A stretch of 64,000 nucleotides of DNA from Paramoeba atlantica (Eukaryota > Protista > Discosea), in the NCBI GenBank assembly GCA_977017575.1, contig CDRNVI010000006.1:124001-188000 (forward strand), read 5' to 3'. Below are positions 8,452-49,403 of the stretch, one piece after another. The first letter of the stretch is position 1; the number at the start of each line of letters is the position of its first letter. The position numbers and the translations under genes are program-made. The notes beneath the pieces are model-generated. The model saw nothing but the letters and a program-made list of their open reading frames with translations, did no database searches and was not told the origin of the DNA.

Positions 8452-8483
8452 CAACAAGGTACAGAAACTGTATCTTTATCGTT
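8452..8483 (-). other. Spliced-leader exon relic (32 nt)
   Basis: Minus strand AACGATAAAGATACAGTTTCTGTACCTTGTTG contains the conserved kinetoplastid SL core ACAGTTTCTGTAC and ends in TTG. Confidence 0.8.
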
Positions 8484-8570
8484 AAAGTTTTTTGTCTTTG
8501 TTTTTTTTCTTTTTTTCTTGTCTTTGTTTTTTTTCTTTTTTTTCTTGTCTTGTCTTGTTTTTTTTTTGTA
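8484..8570 (-). repeat. A-rich tail-like tract with CAAGAC/CAAAGAC units
   Basis: Plus strand is almost pure T with GTCTT/GTCTTT interruptions. Confidence 0.8.
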
Positions 8571-8587: not shown

Positions 8588-11197
8588 TTAGGGCTTTCTC
8601 TGAATATGACTGCCTACCTTACTAATGTCTCTCTCGATCTTACCTTCGTATCTCTCGACCTTCTCCATCTCAATCTCCTTCCCGCGACTGACAGCATCCG
8701 CCGGGTTCTCATCCGTGGATATGTACGCTGCCTTGACACAAATACCTTTCTCCTCAGTCAGTCGCAGGACTTCGCGCAATTCCATTGAAACCCCCTCTGA
8801 CTTGGAGATCCTCCTGTTCAGTGCAGCCTGACAGGAGGTGTTGTCAACAAAAACATCCAAGCAGGTTCCACGGGGGCAATGCGCGGAAAACTTCTCGAGG
8901 GCTAAGCGGACTGCTGCAGCTTCCGCACGATTCACCTCATACGAGGAGGACTCAGGCCACGCCTCTCCCGTAATCAAAACCTCTCCGCTGTCTAAATACA
9001 TAATCGCTCCCCACCCTTTCACCGAGGCATCGGTGTAGAGACGATGCTTGTGTGGAACAACATCGGGATGGGGAGGTGGAGACCGTGGAACATTCTCCAA
9101 CAACTCGTTTCTCCACTCTGCTAGCATGGAGCGAGTGACGACAGGGAGTGCGACCGGACGGTCACATAACTTTGGGCAACGGTTCAACAAGTTGATACGC
9201 CGTTGCGCCACCTTCAAAGCGAAATAAAATCGCGGCATATTGAGTCGGAGAACTGCGGAGCCATAAATGAGGCGCCCCACCACCGCCTCTAGGTCAACAA
9301 AGGAAATGTTGAAGAAAGAGTCGGCTCGCAGTTTCCTGATCACTCGCGGTCCCAGGCAGACCGTATGCGCGTTATGGTCGAACGCCACCCCATTGAACAC
9401 GTAATGTGCTACAGGGGGCTGACCCCGATCTTTGAAAAGACCGTTCGCCTTGTCGCAACGCTCGTCAATGAACTGAGCGTACGTGGTGGCCTCGGAGTGG
9501 GTTCCTGCAAACCGAACTCCGTCAACATAAACGTCGATAGCGCCTCGGTGAAACGAGTAGCGCTGAGAACAAATCGACGCCTCGCCAGCAATCGCGGCGG
9601 TAACCGTGTGCATAACCTCCGGTGCACACCTATGGCCCATCGGGAGGACGTTCATCTCATACACGTCTCCACTGTTCGTTCTAAGGCGGAATTTGGGCCG
9701 CGCCCTCTTCGGGATACCAATCTGGTAAAACCCGCATGTGAAGTCCCGCTTCACAGCCATCGGCTCGTGCGCCTTATGAAGATACTTGGAGGGATGATAT
9801 AATGGGACCTTTGGTTCATATGATTTTAATCTATCGTTATCGTCCCTTGTCCATGAAATAAATCTTCTGCGCTGATTGCCCTGATCATCGGTCTCCACAA
9901 CCGTGAAGGGAATCATGAACTGCATCGATGGGCGCTTTCTCAACTCCTGCGCCGGGACCTTAGAGATTATGCCTGCGTCCTCCAACAATCGGACGTCCGC
10001 CTCAGGCAATGAACCTTTCACACTAGGTTCGGGGTACGGGGCTTTAGGTACCCATAATAATTCATCCACTACCTTGCGAAAACGAGTGGCAGCTGACATA
10101 CTCATCCACTCCTTAACCTGATCCAAATGGATAACAGGTATCGACTTCTTAACGTGCAAAGGTAGGTGAGCGTCGTGTGCCTTGGCTAGCCGTGAAGAGC
10201 GGCGTGCACAAACAACGGAGTGCCTGCGAAGGTAAGGCACTTCCTCGAAGCACTTTGCCACGTGCTCCGAGGTTACAGCACTGGGAGACGTGCTGAGACT
10301 CTCTGCGTCCCGAGAGCCCTTGCCGTTGTAATACTGCTTGCGTTGTAGCGCAACAGTGATTCGACGTTGAGGTGTTTCGTGAGGTTCTGGACGTCCTCCA
10401 TCCTGAGATTCCCGAGGGAGATCTCGTGGAATAGGTAAGTAATTGCACCTCTTTTTATGGAATGTGTTCCGTACCCCGGACCGAGAAGTTGATTCATCCT
10501 GTGGTCCATCTCCCGGACCGTCGTGTAACACAGGCGCTGGCCTGGTCTCAAACTTCCCACAAACTGAGCCAGTTCGGGTGTCCCCGGTCCAGTCACTATC
10601 GCGTAGAGGTACGGCCGGTAAGGATTCAGACGGGTTGTCTTGGTCCCCCTGCCCCAATAAATGATTACCTCGTGACTGGCCACACTCACGAACTGCTCCC
10701 GCCTCAGGTCGGCGGTCTCGGTCCATCTCGCAGCGGCTTTCCAACACAGGAGGCAACACATGCTCTCCTTTACGTCGAGATGACGTCTCAGCTTCTTTAG
10801 AAGAAGTGGCGTGATTGGAAGCATCTGCCGCGTGGGTTCTAGCCCCTCCTGCGCTTGCAGGGCCTTTACGTAGAGACTCAATGGGGTACCTTCGATTCCC
10901 ATGAGCTCGAACAGAGTCCTCAATGCCCCTGCGTACCCCATGCGCGTCGAGGTAGCGAGAGGCAGAGTCTCGAGGAAGAGCACCGCGTTTGCAGGATTCG
11001 CGGTGATAAATAATTGTAATAAATAATTGTTGTTGTTGTTGTTGGTAACAAGAGCGCCTGCAATCCCCACATGCAAGCGCCGCAAGTACCACTCCGGCTC
11101 CCGAAATTGTTCCGGGTACGGGGACGCAAGGCTCTCCTAGGTCCTTCACCAATGACAGAGAACACTCCGTAGTTAGCCTACCATGTGTCAATCCCAC
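8588..11197 (-). CDS. YR retrotransposon family A (VIPER/TATE-like) RT/RNase H ORF, overlapping YR in another frame
   Basis: RT: KRDFTCGFYQIG, LPMGHRCAP, VYVDGV. RNase H: LYTDASVKGWG, NRAEAAAV, FVDNT, ENPADAVSRG. Confidence 0.88.
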   Translation of the reverse strand: MGLTHGRLTTECSLSLVKDLGEPCVPVPGTISGAGVVLAALACGDCRRSCYQQQQQQLFITIIYHRESCKRGALPRDSASRYLDAHGVRRGIEDSVRAHGNRRYPIESLRKGPASAGGARTHAADASNHATSSKEAETSSRRKGEHVLPPVLESRCEMDRDRRPEAGAVRECGQSRGNHLLGQGDQDNPSESLPAVPLRDSDWTGDTRTGSVCGKFETRPAPVLHDGPGDGPQDESTSRSGVRNTFHKKRCNYLPIPRDLPRESQDGGRPEPHETPQRRITVALQRKQYYNGKGSRDAESLSTSPSAVTSEHVAKCFEEVPYLRRHSVVCARRSSRLAKAHDAHLPLHVKKSIPVIHLDQVKEWMSMSAATRFRKVVDELLWVPKAPYPEPSVKGSLPEADVRLLEDAGIISKVPAQELRKRPSMQFMIPFTVVETDDQGNQRRRFISWTRDDNDRLKSYEPKVPLYHPSKYLHKAHEPMAVKRDFTCGFYQIGIPKRARPKFRLRTNSGDVYEMNVLPMGHRCAPEVMHTVTAAIAGEASICSQRYSFHRGAIDVYVDGVRFAGTHSEATTYAQFIDERCDKANGLFKDRGQPPVAHYVFNGVAFDHNAHTVCLGPRVIRKLRADSFFNISFVDLEAVVGRLIYGSAVLRLNMPRFYFALKVAQRRINLLNRCPKLCDRPVALPVVTRSMLAEWRNELLENVPRSPPPHPDVVPHKHRLYTDASVKGWGAIMYLDSGEVLITGEAWPESSSYEVNRAEAAAVRLALEKFSAHCPRGTCLDVFVDNTSCQAALNRRISKSEGVSMELREVLRLTEEKGICVKAAYISTDENPADAVSRGKEIEMEKVERYEGKIERDISKVGSHIQRKP
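10273..11085 (-). CDS. Tyrosine recombinase, family A, C-terminal part intact, N-terminus replaced
   Basis: AAARWTET (R), GRGTKT (K), HSIKRGA, LTKH...LLRY. Identity with the 17.3-18.4 kb copy begins only at ~11005. Confidence 0.85.
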   Translation of the reverse strand: MRRLHVGIAGALVTNNNNNNYLLQLFITANPANAVLFLETLPLATSTRMGYAGALRTLFELMGIEGTPLSLYVKALQAQEGLEPTRQMLPITPLLLKKLRRHLDVKESMCCLLCWKAAARWTETADLRREQFVSVASHEVIIYWGRGTKTTRLNPYRPYLYAIVTGPGTPELAQFVGSLRPGQRLCYTTVREMDHRMNQLLGPGYGTHSIKRGAITYLFHEISLGNLRMEDVQNLTKHLNVESLLRYNASSITTARALGTQRVSARLPVL

Positions 11198-11514
11198 TGG
11201 GAGGGTTCCTGATCAAGCACGAGTGCCGCTTTTACGCTTTAGAGTAGTGTAGCTTTTATGTTTCGGAGGTTCTTCAATTAATTATGCATGTGTAAGCAAG
11301 GAATTTACGTAGTGAGACGTCTATGTCAATGTGTGAATGTAGATATTGTGTGGTATATAGAGCATGTATTTGTGCACCCGCTCAGGAGAAAACAAAATTA
11401 TTAAAGGATATTTTGTACAGTATAATGACATGCAGGACCGTAAGTGAAAGTATGAAAATAGCTGATGTCGTATTCTATTTTACGTTTGTATGCTCAGCGG
11501 ATACCTAAATGTCT

Positions 11515-13248
11515 TCAGTCTCTTGATATGAATGTGAGGCCCTGTTCTGTGAAAAGTCTCCATGCTTTCTGCAAGCGTTTCCATGAATTGTACAATCTGA
11601 AGTTCAATTCATCACTAGAGAACATCCTTTTCGGACGAGTGCCTATGTCAGCTACATTTTCTTCTGTAGGTATATCACAAATGATGAGATTACCCGCAAA
11701 GCACTCATGCTGGCTGATGACCTCGTCCAAGGGATGCACACGAGAATACCCCTTGTCAAAAGCACGAGAAGCCGCGAGATTGTCGCTTGCGATCACCATA
11801 TTAGCGTATCCATGCTCGGTAGCCATGGTGATCGCTTGTGATATGGCTGTCGCTTCTGCAAGCGCAATCGGCAGGTCGCACGACTGCTCGAGTAGGCGGT
11901 CCTTACAGATATTTCCGTTTTCCATAGGCCACACCGCCCAGCGAGAGGTGGTTGCATCAACCGCAGTGTAGAAAACACGTTTCTTGTATGTCAATCTGGA
12001 AAACATGGCCCAGTCCCGGGGCTTATTATTCATAGAAAGAACGCGACACATTCCTGCCTGTATCAGAGACCGACATGGCTTATCAACCGGTACGCTCCAG
12101 TCGGAGATTTCGCCCAAGATACTTTGTTGCTTGGAAATTCGACCTAGATTTCTTGTCGCCACGCCCAGTATAGCGTAAGCATGGCGCAAGTAACCTGCGA
12201 ATTGATACAGTTTCCTTGCAGATACAATATCCATACGGCCCGCTGCAAGTGCCCAACTCTTTACAATAACTGGGTCTGGTATCCATTTTGCCCTTCCTTC
12301 GCTTTGTATGATTTTTATGCCGCAATATGTAAACGAGCAAGTTCTATTTTCCAAAGTCATGTATTTCGTGACAACGTTGAAAAGCTTGAAATTTCGCTCA
12401 AGGCGATAATACCAATCTCTTACTGTTTGTTTACAAGATACGACTAGAAATGAGTCGTATAATAGGGCAATGAATCCTCCCTGGGATAAACTTATTAGAC
12501 CTGGAGCTTCAGTGCATTCATATAAGGTTTTATCTACGTTCAAGTCGAGATCTCCCTCTTCTTCGTATAGCATTATTGCCCACATAATGCTTTGTGCAAT
12601 GCCGCATGCATGCTTGTAACCCATCGGTAATACCGCGGGTCGACATATCATAGGTCCATGCTTTATACAACAGGCATGTCCAAGACCAGATGAGATCGGT
12701 ATCTGGTAGTAGCAGTTGCGGATGTCCCCATGCAGAAAACAGAAACCATTCATTGCGCAATCCCCCAACCGAACTAGAGCGCGGACGAGTACTTGTGTGC
12801 TCGGCACGTGAAAGGGAACACCCTCCCCGACAACACGTTCATTGGTCCAGCGCAAGTCAAAAATTGCTCGCGAATACGTCCCATCCTTAAGTACTGCTAT
12901 GTACTTTCCAAACCCTCGGGCCATCTCCTTTGTAGTCGATATCAATACCCCACATTCTTGTAGGTAACGAATGTGCCTCCTATACTGGGAGGAGTCTGGC
13001 TCAGTCTTTTCAATGTATTGGGTGTCTGGCGGCAAGGGATCAGTGCCTATAAGGGAGATTGCCTGTCGCGAAAAGGGGAAACGGTCTAGGCCTGCGCTAT
13101 CTAACCGGATACCACCTACATTTTGTAGAGGGTAGAGAGTATCCGAGTCGTGTGCAAAGCTTCCGCGTCTGCGAAAATCGCTATCCTCCGGTGCGTAGTA
13201 CGCATCAAAAGGGGAGGACAGTTCAGAGCTTAGAAGTTCGGTATCCAT
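11515..13248 (-). CDS. YR retrotransposon family B RT/RNase H
   Basis: SRAIFDLR, HGDIRNCYYQIP, LPMGYKHA, LLYDSFL; RNase H AVDAT, LAEATAI, ASDNLAA, EENVADIGTR. Confidence 0.85.
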   Translation of the reverse strand: MDTELLSSELSSPFDAYYAPEDSDFRRRGSFAHDSDTLYPLQNVGGIRLDSAGLDRFPFSRQAISLIGTDPLPPDTQYIEKTEPDSSQYRRHIRYLQECGVLISTTKEMARGFGKYIAVLKDGTYSRAIFDLRWTNERVVGEGVPFHVPSTQVLVRALVRLGDCAMNGFCFLHGDIRNCYYQIPISSGLGHACCIKHGPMICRPAVLPMGYKHACGIAQSIMWAIMLYEEEGDLDLNVDKTLYECTEAPGLISLSQGGFIALLYDSFLVVSCKQTVRDWYYRLERNFKLFNVVTKYMTLENRTCSFTYCGIKIIQSEGRAKWIPDPVIVKSWALAAGRMDIVSARKLYQFAGYLRHAYAILGVATRNLGRISKQQSILGEISDWSVPVDKPCRSLIQAGMCRVLSMNNKPRDWAMFSRLTYKKRVFYTAVDATTSRWAVWPMENGNICKDRLLEQSCDLPIALAEATAISQAITMATEHGYANMVIASDNLAASRAFDKGYSRVHPLDEVISQHECFAGNLIICDIPTEENVADIGTRPKRMFSSDELNFRLYNSWKRLQKAWRLFTEQGLTFISRD

Positions 13249-13537
13249 TGTTTTGTGTGCGAAGTGCGTTTGAGATATAATTTATATCATATAATTTATT
13301 CTACTATGGGTGATCTATTTCCTACACAGCCACTATCTCCACATTTCTTAACTTTTATAGTTGGTCCACTTGTCACAGTTTATTGTGACTTTTACTTCAA
13401 TGACAGTGTGTAACTGTGTTCCCATATCTCTCGTCCTTCTCGATACGATTCTACTTATCACCTGTTTATCTAAAGTGTTCTAGTGATGCATACATTGTGT
13501 GCTTTACAATAATGGGACTGATTGTAAATTATTTATT

Positions 13538-14407
13538 TTATTCCATAGAATAACGTGTTGCAGTGAGTTCTGACATCCAGCGCCCTCTTCGAAGACGCGT
13601 GCTCAGATCAACTCCTTGCCGTGTCAAGTGTCCAGCGCAGCCGTGGCGCAGACAGTGGAACGACCATGTTTGCTGGCTGTTCCATCCAAATCGCGCGGCC
13701 GCGGCCGCTATCAAGCGATTGGCTTGCACCTTGTTCCAAGTCGGAAAGAGGCTTGATGTTGTTGAGATTGTTTTGAAGTACCCGAGTAAATGGCGTACTT
13801 CAGGTGCTTGTACCGTATCAACGGCAAAGTGGTGACGACCTTTCCCTCCACGAATTTTTATTAGTACATCGCTTTCGCTGATTTCCACGTCTGATGTCTG
13901 AAGACCTACGAGTTCGGAGTGTCGCAAAAGGCCAAAGTAACCAATTGCAAATCCTTGACCATACGTAATCTCTCCCTGGTCAATACAATATGTGGATAGT
14001 ACGCGAAGCTGGTCACGTGTGATGGAGCCCCGCGGCTTGGGGTCTAAACAAATTTTGAGCACCCCTTTAAATCGCCTTCGAAATCGAAGGGTTTGCGACC
14101 AACACTCGTTCTCTGGAAGGTCCTCAATTTGTCGCCAAACCAGGGCAGCGCGAAATGCTTCCAAGGTGGAGGGTCTGTAAAATCTCGACATGCTAGCACA
14201 TAAGGCAAGGAAATTCTCTTCTGCCATGTTGCATGCACCATGGACACCCATAAGGTGTTCCAGGCGATAAAAATATTGTGCTCGTTTTTGAGCCGTTCCC
14301 GCCGAAACGCCCACCTGAGCGAGCTGTCTATGAATTCCCACTTGAAGAAGAGAACGATACCCTCTCTGAATTTCTGCATCCCGCGAGGTTCGAGACTCTA
14401 GTGTCAT
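13538..14407 (-). CDS. Tyrosine recombinase, family B
   Basis: ATG at 14407 (MTLESR). GLLRHSEL, RGGK, HCLRHG, GRW...TRY: complete R-K-H-R-W-Y set. Confidence 0.88.
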   Translation of the reverse strand: MTLESRTSRDAEIQRGYRSLLQVGIHRQLAQVGVSAGTAQKRAQYFYRLEHLMGVHGACNMAEENFLALCASMSRFYRPSTLEAFRAALVWRQIEDLPENECWSQTLRFRRRFKGVLKICLDPKPRGSITRDQLRVLSTYCIDQGEITYGQGFAIGYFGLLRHSELVGLQTSDVEISESDVLIKIRGGKGRHHFAVDTVQAPEVRHLLGYFKTISTTSSLFPTWNKVQANRLIAAAAARFGWNSQQTWSFHCLRHGCAGHLTRQGVDLSTRLRRGRWMSELTATRYSME

Positions 14408-14757
14408 GTTGAGTGCTAGAAATGGCGGAACAATAATTACATTATACAGTATGTAGTATACGTATGATCTGGAGTTTTCATAAAGTAGACACGTACAACT
14501 GGCTACCGTGTGCAACGATTCTTAAATAGCTGAAGTATATAGGTACTTCGTAATAGAACACTTGTTTATAAATATTGTGTCGGCACACTTATCAGCACCC
14601 ATAATATATTTATCGGCATCCATTTTTAGTATCTTACTACTTTTTCGGGAGTTTTTATCAAATGTACGTGAAAAATACTTTTCTAGTGTTTGATACGAAC
14701 GCTTACTTTGCTTTCCACTCTTTCTTTCATACTTATTTTCATTTTGTGGTTCAATGT

Positions 14758-15822
14758 TTATTCATCGCGCCCGCGTTTGCCATGTCTAGGGAGAAATGGT
14801 TTTTCACGGTCGCGATGTTGACTAGCTTTGCAGTTCCGGGCCTGGTGCCCCCTTTTTCCGCAGTTCCAGCACGTTCCACCAGATGTACTGGAAACCGTTT
14901 GTCTAAAGCCATAACGGGGCTTTAAGTCCGGAGGAGCGCCGCGAGCGGATGCGCGTCCTTCAAGATTCAGACTCGGACGAGAGTGATGTACCTGCGACAC
15001 CGCACGTGAATGCGCGGCGAGATGCGCAACAATGGACTTGTTGCTCGTATCGACTGAATTGTCCCGCATGAGGGATTCCAGCGTTTCACGGGACACTGAG
15101 ACTCCCTCGTGCCGCAGTCGATACGACATTACGATCGCACCGAGCTTGCACAACAGCGTCCACACGCTCAGACGAACCCCGTCGTCTTTCGCGTTCGCGA
15201 AGGGGACACCTGGTGGAATTTCGGTCAGTGCCTTGGCGTAGTATGCCCAGTCCAAACGTCCTGCGGCAACGTCACAAACTTGGCGTTTGACATTCGGAGT
15301 AATCCAGGGCTCCGTGCAGAAGCCGGTCTGGGTAAGGCACGTGTGGATCGCCTCCCCGCACCGGGGGTCTTCTTGGGTCCCGATAATGGATCGAAAAGCC
15401 TCGCGGAGGTCTTTAGACGGGTGCTTCGTATTTGCTTCGGGGTGATGCGTCTGAGAGTTCACCGTAGGTTTTTCGAGAAGAGACGCCTCTTCTGCACCAA
15501 GCTCATCACGAAGCGCAACAAGGACTTGCGCGGGCACTTCGCTGCTTGCAAATGTACCATTTTGTACTGCAGCCAACGCGAGACGAATGCTCCGCGAGCC
15601 TGGTACACTGCTGCCTCTTCCCGCGTGCGCGCACGCACGTTCTAGGAGAGGATCGATTGGCATGCGCTCTTTCGCGAATTGGATTGCCCCGGGAATAACG
15701 GTGAGTAAATCCTGACGAACAGTCAGTCCCAGGCGTTTCATTGAGCATATTTGCTTAAATGCCTCCTCAGCCGAAACAGTGGGTGCTGCAACAGGCACCA
15801 ATTCGGGGATAGCATCAGACAT
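14758..15822 (-). CDS. Gag-like protein with CCHC zinc knuckle, family B
   Basis: ATG at 15822 (MSDAIP); CWNCGKRGHQARNC; lies upstream of YR and RT. Confidence 0.8.
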   Translation of the reverse strand: MSDAIPELVPVAAPTVSAEEAFKQICSMKRLGLTVRQDLLTVIPGAIQFAKERMPIDPLLERACAHAGRGSSVPGSRSIRLALAAVQNGTFASSEVPAQVLVALRDELGAEEASLLEKPTVNSQTHHPEANTKHPSKDLREAFRSIIGTQEDPRCGEAIHTCLTQTGFCTEPWITPNVKRQVCDVAAGRLDWAYYAKALTEIPPGVPFANAKDDGVRLSVWTLLCKLGAIVMSYRLRHEGVSVSRETLESLMRDNSVDTSNKSIVAHLAAHSRAVSQVHHSRPSLNLEGRASARGAPPDLKPRYGFRQTVSSTSGGTCWNCGKRGHQARNCKASQHRDREKPFLPRHGKRGRDE

Positions 15823-16157
15823 TGTAGTATTTTGAAAAACGAACAAAGACGTAAAACATGCGTTTTTACACTGCTTACGGAGTGAGAAACTCACAGCCGA
15901 TTACACATTACCTAAAGATTAATCCAACCGTAACAATATCTACATCAAGACGGGGCTATCCTTCAAATCAAGCAGCCGTGTAAGCCTAAATTAAACGATA
16001 ACTTGCATCCCGTGCCGATTCTTGCAAACTAGATATTTTTGAGTCACATCACGACTCATATTACCAAAGGTTGGAGTTATTAACTCGTCACAAGGTAACC
16101 TGACGCGCCGCTTCGTACGGCATTTTCAAACGTACCACAAGCTTAAAAACTGCGCTT

Positions 16158-16942
16158 GTAACATACAGAGCGCTTGGCGCACGATCACGGCGCTATATTC
16201 CTTGCGTTTAACGTAATTACCGAGCCAATGGGCTCATGTAGTGCTCGGCATGGCAACTACATCACAAACTTAAAAGCTACGCTCGTAACATACAGAGCGC
16301 TTGGCGCACGATCACGGCGCTATATTCCTTACGTTCAACGTAATTACCGAGCCAATGGGCTCATGTAGTGCTCGGCATGGCAACTACATCACAAACTTAA
16401 AAGCTACGCTCGTAACACACAGAGCGCTTGGCGCATGATCACAGCGCTATGTTACTTACGTTCAACGTAATTACCGAGCCAATGGGCTCATGTAGTGCTC
16501 GGCATGGCAACTACATCACAAACTTAAAAGCTACGCTCGTAACATACAGAGCGCTTGGCGCACGATCACGGCGCTATGTTCCTTACGTTCAACGTAATTA
16601 CCGAGCCAATGGGCTCATGTAGTACTCGGCATGGCAACTACATCACAAACTTAAAAGCTACGCTCGTAACATACAGAGCGCTTGGCGCACGATCACGGCG
16701 CTATATTCCTTACGTTCAACGTAATTACCGAGCCAATGGGCTCATGTAGTGCTCGGCATGGCAACTACATCACAAACTTAAAAGCTACGCTCGTAACACA
16801 CAGAGCGCTTGGCGCACGATCACGGCGCTATATTCCTTACGTTCAACGTAATTACCGAGCCAATGGGCTCATGTAGTGCTCGGCATGGCAACTACATCAC
16901 AAACTTAAAAGCTACGCTCGTAACACACAGAGCGCTTGGCGC
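16158..16942. repeat. 127-bp tandem array, six full units plus a partial
   Basis: Unit starts at 16158, 16285, 16412, 16539, 16666, 16793, 16920; only a few substitutions between units; no spacers. Confidence 0.97.
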
Positions 16943-17191
16943 TCGCTCGCATTACGTGTCATGGATTTTGAGAGATAAAGGAAAACATGCAATGGCAGTA
17001 CGTGAAACCAGTGCTATGATATTTATCGATCTAATTATCTGCATTGTCTATAAATTTATAGATTTTTTTTTTTTTTTTTAAATACTTTCCCCCCTTTCAT
17101 GCTTCCCATCCCTTACTTAGTATATAGTATCATCCGACCTCAGCCTCCCACAGGAAGTGTGCATAACATTCCTTGTAGGTAGTCATGCATT

Positions 17192-17383
17192 ACTTCCTTT
17201 CGTGGGCATCGGTCTCCTTTAACCCTGCCGGTGCAAAGCAGAGGTCGGATGTAATCCCCCCCCTCATTCGGTCGTATTTCCCCCTAGCCTTCCATCACCT
17301 TTCCACATTTCCTGAGAAATGTGGCCCCGGGCTTTGGACCGGAATTGCAGGGTTAAAGGAGACCGATGCCCACGAAAGGAAGT
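17192..17383. repeat. Perfect 37-bp inverted repeat around a 118-bp spacer
   Basis: 17192-17228 ACTTCCTTTCGTGGGCATCGGTCTCCTTTAACCCTGC is the exact reverse complement of 17347-17383. Confidence 0.95.
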
Positions 17384-18434
17384 CCTCCATCCTGAGATTC
17401 CCGAGGGAGATCTCGTGGAATAGGTAAGTAATTGCACCTCTTTTTATGGAATGTGTTCCATACCCCGGACCGAGAAGTTGATTCATCCTGTGGTCCATCT
17501 CCCGGACCGTCGTGTAACACAGGCGCTGGCCTGGTCTCAAACTTCCCACAAACTGAGCCAGTTCGGGTGTCCCCGGTCCAGTCACTATCGCGTAGAGGTA
17601 CGGCCGGTAAGGATTCAGACGGGTTGTCTTGGTCCCCCTGCCCCAATAAATGATTACCTCGTGACTGGCCACACTCACGAACTGCTCCCGCCTCAGGTCG
17701 GCGGTCTCGGTCCATCTCGCAGCGGCTTTCCAACACAGGAGGCAACACATGCTCTCCTTTACGTCGAGATGACGTCTCAGCTTCTTTAGAAGAAGTGGCG
17801 TGATTGGAAGCATCTGCCGCGTGGGTTCTAGCCCCTCCTGCGCTTGCAGGGCCTTTACGTAGAGACTCAATGGGGTACCTTCGATTCCCATGAGCTCGAA
17901 CAGAGTCCTCAATGCCCCTGCGTACCCCATGCGCGTCGAGGTAGCGAGAGGCAGAGTCTCGAGGAAGAGCACCGCGTTTGCAGGATTCGCGGTGATTCCC
18001 TTCGCCTGGCAATACTCGCGCAGGCGGAACCACAGTCGCTCCCTTGTGGCCCACGTGGCCGTTGCCCACATGGGCTGGAGCGCCTCGCCCAACTGGGTGG
18101 CGCGAGGATCGTCGGCGGGCATCCTCAGAATGGCCTCGAGCAGCTGCTTGCGGTGTTTTCCTGGCGGCTGTGCGGCGTCGGCGGTTACGACGGCGGCGGG
18201 TTTGGCGGCGGCGGGTTTGGGAGGAACGGTGAGCCGGGGGAGAGGAAGTGCCGGAAGAGCGACGCTGCGACGTCGTAGCCGTAACGGGGAGAGAGGGCGT
18301 GGAGGAGGAGTATTGCCACGCACGCGTGGCCGTCTTTCGCGCTGGCGGAGGGACGGAGAGGGAACAGGTGTATGAAAATCCACCCGTCGTCGCCTGGGAC
18401 GACGGGCACGAGCAGTAACTGGGGTGGGGAGCAT
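17295..18434 (-). pseudogene. Tyrosine recombinase, family A, C-terminally truncated
   Basis: Near-identical to 10393-11005 over 17384-17995; after GNLRMED it runs into the inverted repeat and loses the final His and Tyr. Confidence 0.85.
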
Positions 18435-49080: not shown

Positions 49081-49403
49081 AATTATTAACTGCCACTATG
49101 TGGGTGCCCTGCTTGTCTCAAATCTCGGCAACCAGATTCCCCAGATGGGGAAGGAACGCCGCGTGGCCCCGTAGAAGGGTCCTGCAGCGCATGGGGACTC
49201 GGAACCGTGTTCCGAGCGGGGCGGTCGGAAATGAAGAAAGGGAGGCGCACCCCTACTTTACGACAAGAGGGACAGTTCCTCTCCTAGCGCCATCCGGAAA
49301 CGGGCATTAAAACAGTAAAAGTATGCCCGTTTCCGGGAGAGAAAAGATGAGATAGGAAACAACAAGGTACAACAAGGTACAGAAACTGTATCTTTGTCAT
49401 AGC
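49081..49403 (-). mobile_element. SL-headed hairpin element, copy 2
   Basis: 34-nt relic GCTATGACAAAGATACAGTTTCTGTACCTTGTTG (49370-49403), its last 10 nt repeated in tandem, pyrimidine tract, 14-bp hairpin ~49293-49336. Confidence 0.75.

Follow-up and report, generated by a model that had tools for sequence, protein, structure and literature searches.

A copy-number-variable 127-bp tandem array in the leader of a predicted VIPER/DIRS-like retrotransposon of Paramoeba atlantica

Introduction

A stretch of 64,000 nucleotides from Paramoeba atlantica (contig CDRNVI010000006.1, positions 124,001 to 188,000 of the forward strand; hereafter the window, in whose coordinates positions are given unless another contig is named) contains a tandem array of 127-bp units, each crowded with short palindromes, upstream of a gag-like gene. 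Does such an array serve the RNA of the element that carries it, or is it a repeat that the element tolerates? The initial annotation, made from the letters of the window, took the former view: it read an H-type pseudoknot into each unit and suggested a multimeric structured RNA that might act as a promoter, an internal ribosome entry site (IRES)-like element, a packaging or priming signal, or a self-processing unit. Judged from its coding regions, the host of the array is a predicted VIPER/DIRS-like tyrosine-recombinase (YR) retrotransposon on the minus strand, with the gene order gag / tyrosine recombinase / reverse transcriptase (RT)-RNase H, which we refer to as family B. Comparison of four genomic copies placed the element at about 11022-17382 (~6.4 kb), with a leader of 1.56 kb. 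We consider it probable that the array is an element-internal tandem repeat of variable copy number, forming a hypervariable region of the long non-coding leader of this twister-like-headed retrotransposon. The array is confined to four young copies of this one family, where it has a fixed site after the 5' head and before gag. In related families the head and the 3' tail are retained, but unrelated arrays or none are found at that site.

The array and its unit

Tandem Repeats Finder (TRF) placed the array at 16136-16942 on the minus strand, which is the sense strand of the element, with a period of 127 bp, 6.4 copies and 97% matches, and the in-register matches of a covariance model built from the units, together with a table of the units, supported this layout. 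The array itself had been recognized in the initial annotation at 16158-16942, and its start is now moved 22 nt, to 16136. The covariance model also matched 16079-16198 at 68.9 bits, representing a half-diverged extra unit. Toward gag, the last unit is continued at 16079-16135 (minus strand, a repeat copy of 67% identity), where half 1 is array-like and half 2 has diverged, with another hairpin, GUACG...CGUAC, at the corresponding place. The terminal unit passes into unique sequence after ~63 nt and has 4 private changes in its first half, which fits growth of the array from an original stretch of ~1.4 units.

All the stems and hairpins that had been named were present in each unit: CCGAGC/GCTCGG is crossed by ATGTAGT/ACTACAT with a junction of 0 nt, and these are accompanied by the hairpins TTACGT-TCA-ACGTAA and GCGC-TTG-GCGC. 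The unit holds additional palindromes, namely CGCTC...GAGCG, GCGCCG-TGAT-CGTGCGC, which is a competitor of GCGC-TTG-GCGC, and GAGCC-CATT-GGCTC, which is a competitor of the CCGAGC/GCTCGG stem. Sixteen units (13 distinct), with an identity of ~98%, could be aligned over the four loci described below. In the units of these loci, 30 of the 30 consensus stem pairs were Watson-Crick and none was G-U, as would be expected of young palindromes and not of a long-selected RNA fold. Because all consensus pairs are Watson-Crick, the stems form equally on either strand and give no clue to the one on which selection might act. Reading that strand from folding was tried and abandoned, as the difference in z-score (z) reflects base composition and the single changes point both ways.

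Distribution and turnover of the array

The 45.7-Mb genome was searched for the unit by BLAST with two units, with the covariance model and with two exact 13-mers. The unit was present at four loci only, one on each of the contigs C6 (the window), C56, C51 and C3. All 24 covariance-model matches and all exact 13-mer matches (20 and 16, respectively) fell within these four loci, and the covariance model detected no diverged unit copies elsewhere in the whole genome. The only 99-100% genome matches to the leader tail and to the RT region were the same four loci. The tie between array and family B proposed in the initial annotation thus held genome-wide: each of the four array loci is a family B copy, and each of the four family B copies that keep the leader carries the array. 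Since all arrays lie inside family B copies, the array is not a free satellite. Its offset to gag was identical in all four copies; in the window, the distance of the gag ATG at 15822 is 313 nt to the array end and 336 nt to 16158, the latter in good agreement with the ~340 bp, in element orientation, of the initial annotation.

The number of units varied between the copies (6.4, 6.4, 4.4 and 4.4), and the element outside the array was 99.2-99.75% identical between them. Unit variants were also arranged differently among the copies. The variants 62G and 108A were found both together and apart, a unit with five changes was common to C6 and C56 only, and 29C occurred in nearly all units of C3. 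Since the number and order of units differ while the flanks are almost identical, the array evolves far more rapidly than the sequence around it, in the manner of a variable-number repeat. Full coding capacity was retained in three of the four copies; the C3 copy has an internal deletion of ~630 bp in gag.

Conserved modules and variable arrays in related families

Gag relatives were numerous in the genome, with identities of 33-56%, and the leaders of these other families were read up to 1.5 kb upstream of gag. Many Gag-related families had the head of the leader, its first ~250 nt, in common, with a DNA identity of 75-88%. Likewise, the 3' terminal module (11030-11233, minus strand), which makes up the final ~200 nt of the element, was common to many other families, at 81-98% DNA identity, and is probably a conserved 3' cis-module. 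Judged by these identities, head and 3' tail appear to be the conserved cis-acting modules of these elements.

Tandem arrays were found upstream of related gag genes with periods of 31 bp (at least 9 units), 64 bp (11), 60 bp (4.2), 71 bp (2.5), 57 bp (1.9) and 27 bp (3), and in the three families where the head could be placed, the array lay between head and gag. Similarity between these arrays and the 127-mer was not above that of shuffles. A homology of the 127-mer to the arrays of sister families was considered because of a common ATGTAG ... CCGAG and was rejected, as this match did not exceed shuffles either. Furthermore, two leaders with a twister-like head had no array within 1.5 kb upstream of gag. 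The related arrays also differed in structure, with folding z from -8 (31-mer) to +3 or +4 (60-mer). In the closest sister family (Gag 51-56% identical; L026:1-294, L034:1-294), the 31-bp leader array is a dense alternating palindrome with the hairpin loops GAG and UAUGUAGCA and a folding z of -6 to -9.

The twister-like head and the terminal repeats

The ends of the four copies place the 5' end of the element at ~17382, and a match to the Rfam family Twister-P5 marks a twister-like motif at 17285-17382 (to 17393) on the minus strand. The predicted U|A cut falls between 17355 and 17354, 28 nt inside the 5' end. The Twister-P5 score of this head was 24.7 bits, under the Rfam gathering score of 37.6, and the heads of relatives reached 25.7-28.6 bits with twister-P1, for which the threshold is 67.2. 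The family B head was also compared with four related heads, covering three lineages. The core UAACCCUGC, CCGGUCCAAAGCCCGG and GGUGAUGGAAG block was invariant or nearly so, with one substitution each among the five heads, and compensatory pairs were found across the five heads, 4 in the P5-like hairpin and 1 in P1. Despite the sub-threshold Rfam score, this alignment supports the twister-like assignment of the head, with self-cleavage as its predicted activity. The self-cleaving candidate of the element is thus the head motif, ~410 nt upstream of the array, and not the array unit.

In the sense direction, the leader consists of the 5' end, the twister-like motif, A', B, an A-run, a spacer, the array and a unique tail, followed by gag. 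A' (17185-17228, minus strand) is an inverted copy of the 5' terminal 44 nt (A), 93% complementary to it and found by self-BLAST in all four copies; it would represent a spare copy of the piece that the predicted cut removes. B (17083-17190, minus strand) is a leader segment recognized by self-BLAST from inverted pairs of 107 and 121 bp with 98-100% identity. Its inverted counterpart B' lies beyond the (CAA)n 3' end in the C51 copy (252680-252786) and the C3 copy (115978-116098; loci L016 and L017). The copies of the window and of C56 lack B' and end at the (CAA)n run, which in the window is at about 11022. Terminal repeats with an internal complement were therefore present as A/A' (44 nt) in four of four copies and as B/B' (107-121 bp) in C51 and C3.

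The A-run (17063-17079, minus strand) was hypervariable in length among the copies (11, 13, 17 and 22). Comparison of genomic matches defined the 120-nt spacer between A-run and array (16943-17062, minus strand), and the unique tail of 313 nt between array and gag ATG (15823-16135, minus strand) occurred in the four family B copies only. A piece of ~100 nt with a pyrimidine-rich end, at 16966-17079, was also found at 97-99% identity at five array-free loci (C4:359811, C63:573077, C63:584443, C25:190035 and C43:741741), so that the leader looks like a mosaic; by its distribution, this piece may be a portable module or a part of another repeat.

Origin of the array and alternative explanations

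Taken together, we infer the following origin of the array and a tolerance of the leader for it. The array would have started from a stretch of ~1.4 units and would grow and shrink by slippage or unequal exchange; an alternative route would be RT strand transfer between co-packaged RNAs, perhaps favored by the perfect palindromes. It would persist because the leader, as the only long non-coding stretch of the element, is the one that can take up insertions. Its hairpins could form on either strand and may add binding or dimerization sites for the element RNA, so some use of them is possible. The array appears to be neither an essential conserved cis-element nor a ribozyme, and its behavior can be accounted for with no pseudoknot.

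Several observations weigh against a repeat that is only tolerated. The hairpin-dense 31-mer arrays of the sister family occupy the corresponding leader position, and such recurrence could reflect selection for a hairpin-rich stretch. Variability in the block that holds the crossing stems is slightly lower than in the other parts of the unit (P = 0.04-0.10). Among the units there is a single compensatory double change, C-G to U-A, which falls in the GCGCCG-UGAU-CGUGCGC hairpin, outside that block, and has a chance probability of ~0.03 by a rough estimate; quasi-palindrome (templated) correction could also have produced it. In addition, the predicted unpaired linker of every unit is complementary at 20 of 25 positions to a stretch of the 3' untranslated region (UTR) at 11246-11270 (minus strand), adjoining the conserved 3' tail and found by an inverted-repeat search, and the significance of this match is borderline. 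None of 60 shuffles reached 20/25 by ungapped count, the local alignment score was not above shuffles, and 32% of shuffles had a duplex energy at least as good. A 5'-3' cyclization through this complement was accordingly set aside as a finding, as it beats all 60 shuffles by the one measure and fails the two others, and it is kept as a lead.

These observations lead to the alternative that the array is a selected, multimerized RNA hairpin module, with no need of a pseudoknot, which would provide Gag packaging sites, dimerization stems or protection of the uncapped, ribozyme-cut RNA. We regard this as possible, though on balance unlikely. Its position between the 5' end and gag is where retroviral packaging and dimerization signals sit, the closest sister families have hairpin-rich arrays at the same place, and the one compensatory pair is in its favor. 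Moreover, with 45 upstream ATGs, of which the array contributes 23, the 1.56-kb leader is improbable as a scanned mRNA leader and more likely part of genomic RNA. No strong pyrimidine tract was found between array and gag, and this, together with the upstream ATGs, suggests that Gag is probably not translated by scanning through the leader. However, some related arrays are unstructured (z of -1.5 and of +3 to +4), and certain leaders lack an array altogether. The sequence and period of the arrays vary between families, whereas the true cis-modules, head and tail, are conserved, and the copy number is free to vary. Furthermore, the fold of a single unit surpassed those of its shuffles on the + strand (z -3.6 to -3.9) but did not clearly do so on the sense strand (z -0.9 to -1.7), and the z of two units was -2.7 for the sense and -4.6 for the antisense strand. 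For the packaging role and the IRES-like role suggested in the initial annotation, we found evidence neither for nor against.

A broader version of a role in RNA would be that hairpin-dense leader arrays are convergently kept in ribozyme-headed YR elements. They would form a multivalent platform for Gag binding or dimerization, and their linkers would pair with the 3'-UTR stretch. Through this pairing the 3' end would be brought to the splint in the leader, from which the ends are rebuilt once the ribozyme has cut. We hold this to be doubtful.

Action of the array at the DNA level, with the units as promoter or enhancer monomers or with the palindromes bound by a host factor or the recombinase, is more doubtful still. 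Tandem monomers in the 5' UTR of a retroelement have a precedent in mouse L1 (PMC9022269). The palindromes of the stems have perfect Watson-Crick pairing and read the same on either strand, and just past the array there is a strong pyrimidine tract on the + strand. There, at 17063-17120, a T17 run is followed by a C/T-rich tract and then AG, antisense to the element, and by its composition this sequence resembles a trans-splicing signal of kinetoplastids, directed outward through the element head. However, both the predicted cleavage site and the A'-B splint lie ~410 nt upstream of the array. RNA started from a sense promoter in the array would lack both of these for the rebuilding of its ends, and the promoter of the initial annotation is therefore unlikely. 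Kinetoplastid-type genomes rely on polycistronic read-through, a mode that the head ribozyme would fit and that argues against a promoter of the element's own. The palindrome arms are only 4-7 bp long, compared to the 11-13-bp arms of known recombinase core sites, and DIRS-type elements have their recombination junction at the joined ends, not in the leader.

The reading from which the locus was first described, that each unit is an H-type pseudoknot device for self-processing, IRES-like activity or priming, is very improbable. The geometry itself is sound. The perfect crossing stems of 7 and 6 bp, with a 0-nt junction and loops of 7 and 10 nt, are sterically feasible, and a comparable arrangement (two perfect stems of at least 6 bp with a junction of at most 1 nt) was found in only 56 of 3000 dinucleotide shuffles of the unit (1.9%). 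In the 6-bp stem, three units have a change from C-G to U-G that preserves pairing on the sense strand. However, the nested fold of the block, consisting of the ATGTAGT hairpin and the GAGCC/GGCTC hairpin, had a minimum free energy of -16.8 kcal/mol, compared to about -11 to -14 kcal/mol for the crossing stems including the pseudoknot penalty. The latter value comes from an approximate hand model, in which the stem stacks contribute -5.9 and -9.5 by duplex evaluation (about -10 and -13.6 without the initiation term) and the Dirks-Pierce parameters supply the penalty of ~9.6.

The alignment of units adds little in favor of the crossing stems. Among the 16 aligned units, whose identity of ~98% leaves covariation without power, the 7-bp stem was invariant, one pair of the 6-bp stem was broken in edge units, and neither stem showed a compensatory change. 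The initial annotation had noted that nearly all unit differences fall in the first half. This skew was present in the window, where 1 of 12 variable sites lay in the 45-nt block of the crossing stems (binomial P = 0.04), and it became weaker with all four loci (3 of 17, P = 0.10); a split by half-units over the four loci put 3 of 17 variable sites in 52 nt (P = 0.04). With a more stable nested fold, no covariation in the crossing stems and a single sense unit not clearly above shuffles, a conserved pseudoknot or a self-cutting RNA in each unit is not supported.

Self-processing and priming fared no better, as nothing pointed to either. The scans with Rfam covered hammerhead, twister, twister-sister, pistol, hatchet, HDV-like, hairpin and VS ribozymes. 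With E up to 10, neither strand of 16079-16942 gave a ribozyme match, and permissive scans of 15000-18000 and of the whole window showed only noise in the array. With E up to 1, a scan of the whole window likewise gave no ribozyme match to the unit, which bears out the initial annotation in recognizing no known ribozyme; the element head, in contrast, already holds a ribozyme candidate. The two TGG-led 13-mers of the unit had no genomic match outside the arrays, and hence there is no match to a tRNA 3' end. A tRNA-type primer-binding site in the unit was thus ruled out.

That the array is an independent satellite, a captured host repeat beside the element or an assembly artifact is hardly credible, since all occurrences in this assembly are embedded in family B copies, with a constant offset from gag, and four separate contigs agree.

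A variable-number repeat inside the leader of family B thus remains our preferred reading. Taken alone, such a variable tandem repeat in a mobile element is nothing out of the ordinary, and its value lies in the context. The comparison between families separates the conserved non-coding RNA parts, head and 3' tail, from a leader interior that is free to vary and that carries the arrays. If it is true that recurrent hairpin arrays serve the RNA, they would offer an accessible handle on packaging and cyclization in poorly understood elements.

Coding regions and surroundings of the element

The gag-like open reading frame (ORF; 14758-15822, minus strand) encodes a protein of 355 aa, with its first in-frame ATG at 15822 (Met at codon 25). 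It was assigned from its translation and from a CCHC zinc knuckle (Pfam zf-CCHC, E = 8.7e-6). The tyrosine recombinase ORF (13538-14515, minus strand) matched Pfam Phage_integrase at E = 6.8e-10. The RT/RNase H ORF (11515-13248, minus strand; 577 aa) is weak in Pfam, with a faint match to RVT_3. RT motifs A and B and the RNase H DEDD pattern were read in it by eye, its nearest clusters in the ESM Atlas were Euglenozoa proteins with RVT_1 or RT_RNaseH, and a sequence search of the PDB with it returned no match. The RT assignment is consequently the weakest among the three coding domains.

An ORF of 869 aa at 8588-11197 (minus strand) was considered as a further part of the element and rejected, as it belongs to a neighboring fragment. 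RT motif C, read by eye, is LYDS in family B (11515-13248) and YVDG in this neighboring fragment, in place of the usual YxDD; judging from these two, such a motif C may be a trait of the RTs of kinetoplastid YR elements. The window also contains two spliced-leader-like relics ending ...GATACAGTTTCTGTACCTTGTTG, at 8452-8490 and 49370-49400 (minus strand), which by their sequence would fit a kinetoplastid-type host.

Comparison with known systems

Small self-cleaving RNAs are known both as tandem repeats, in hammerhead satellites and retrozymes, and as heads of retroelements, in the HDV-like ribozymes of R2 and L1Tc. As in R2 and L1Tc, a small self-cleaving RNA would define the 5' end of family B, a role that fits the twister-like head. 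Unlike in hammerhead satellites and retrozymes, the repeated unit here has no recognizable ribozyme, and the element has one ribozyme-like motif, outside the array.

In its gene order (gag, YR, RT/RNase H), in terminal repeats matched by an internal complementary stretch and in a spliced-leader protist host, family B resembles VIPER/TATE and DIRS-type elements (PMC6681497, PMC7192593). The published VIPER/TATE elements differ in that they have split direct repeats, with no ribozyme mentioned, as opposed to the inverted A/A' and B/B' pairs and the twister-like head of family B. Some TATE copies of Bodo saltans and L. braziliensis have "more complex patterns of repetitions" (PMC6681497), and a keyword search of that paper found no tandem array in a leader.

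The 5'-UTR monomers of mouse L1 are similar to the array in being tandem units of ~100-200 bp upstream of the first ORF, whose number varies between copies (PMC9022269). However, the L1 monomers are located at the extreme 5' end and constitute the promoter (PMC9022269), whereas the array of family B lies within the leader, preceded by a ribozyme-like head and an end-repair splint, and sense promoter activity is unlikely for it.

The UTRs of Tat/Ogre long terminal repeat (LTR) retrotransposons contain hypervariable tandem-repeat regions in which both the sequence and the length of the monomers vary, a variation that has been attributed to abnormal strand transfer (PMC7004042), a route likewise proposed here for family B. 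These regions belong to plant LTR elements, where they occupy the 3' UTR, and free satellites have arisen from them (PMC7004042). The array described here, by contrast, is part of a 5' leader, that of a tyrosine-recombinase element, and the genome contains no free array. What family B has in common with Tat/Ogre is the pattern itself: short tandem arrays at a fixed non-coding site, with family-specific monomers and a variable copy number (PMC7004042).

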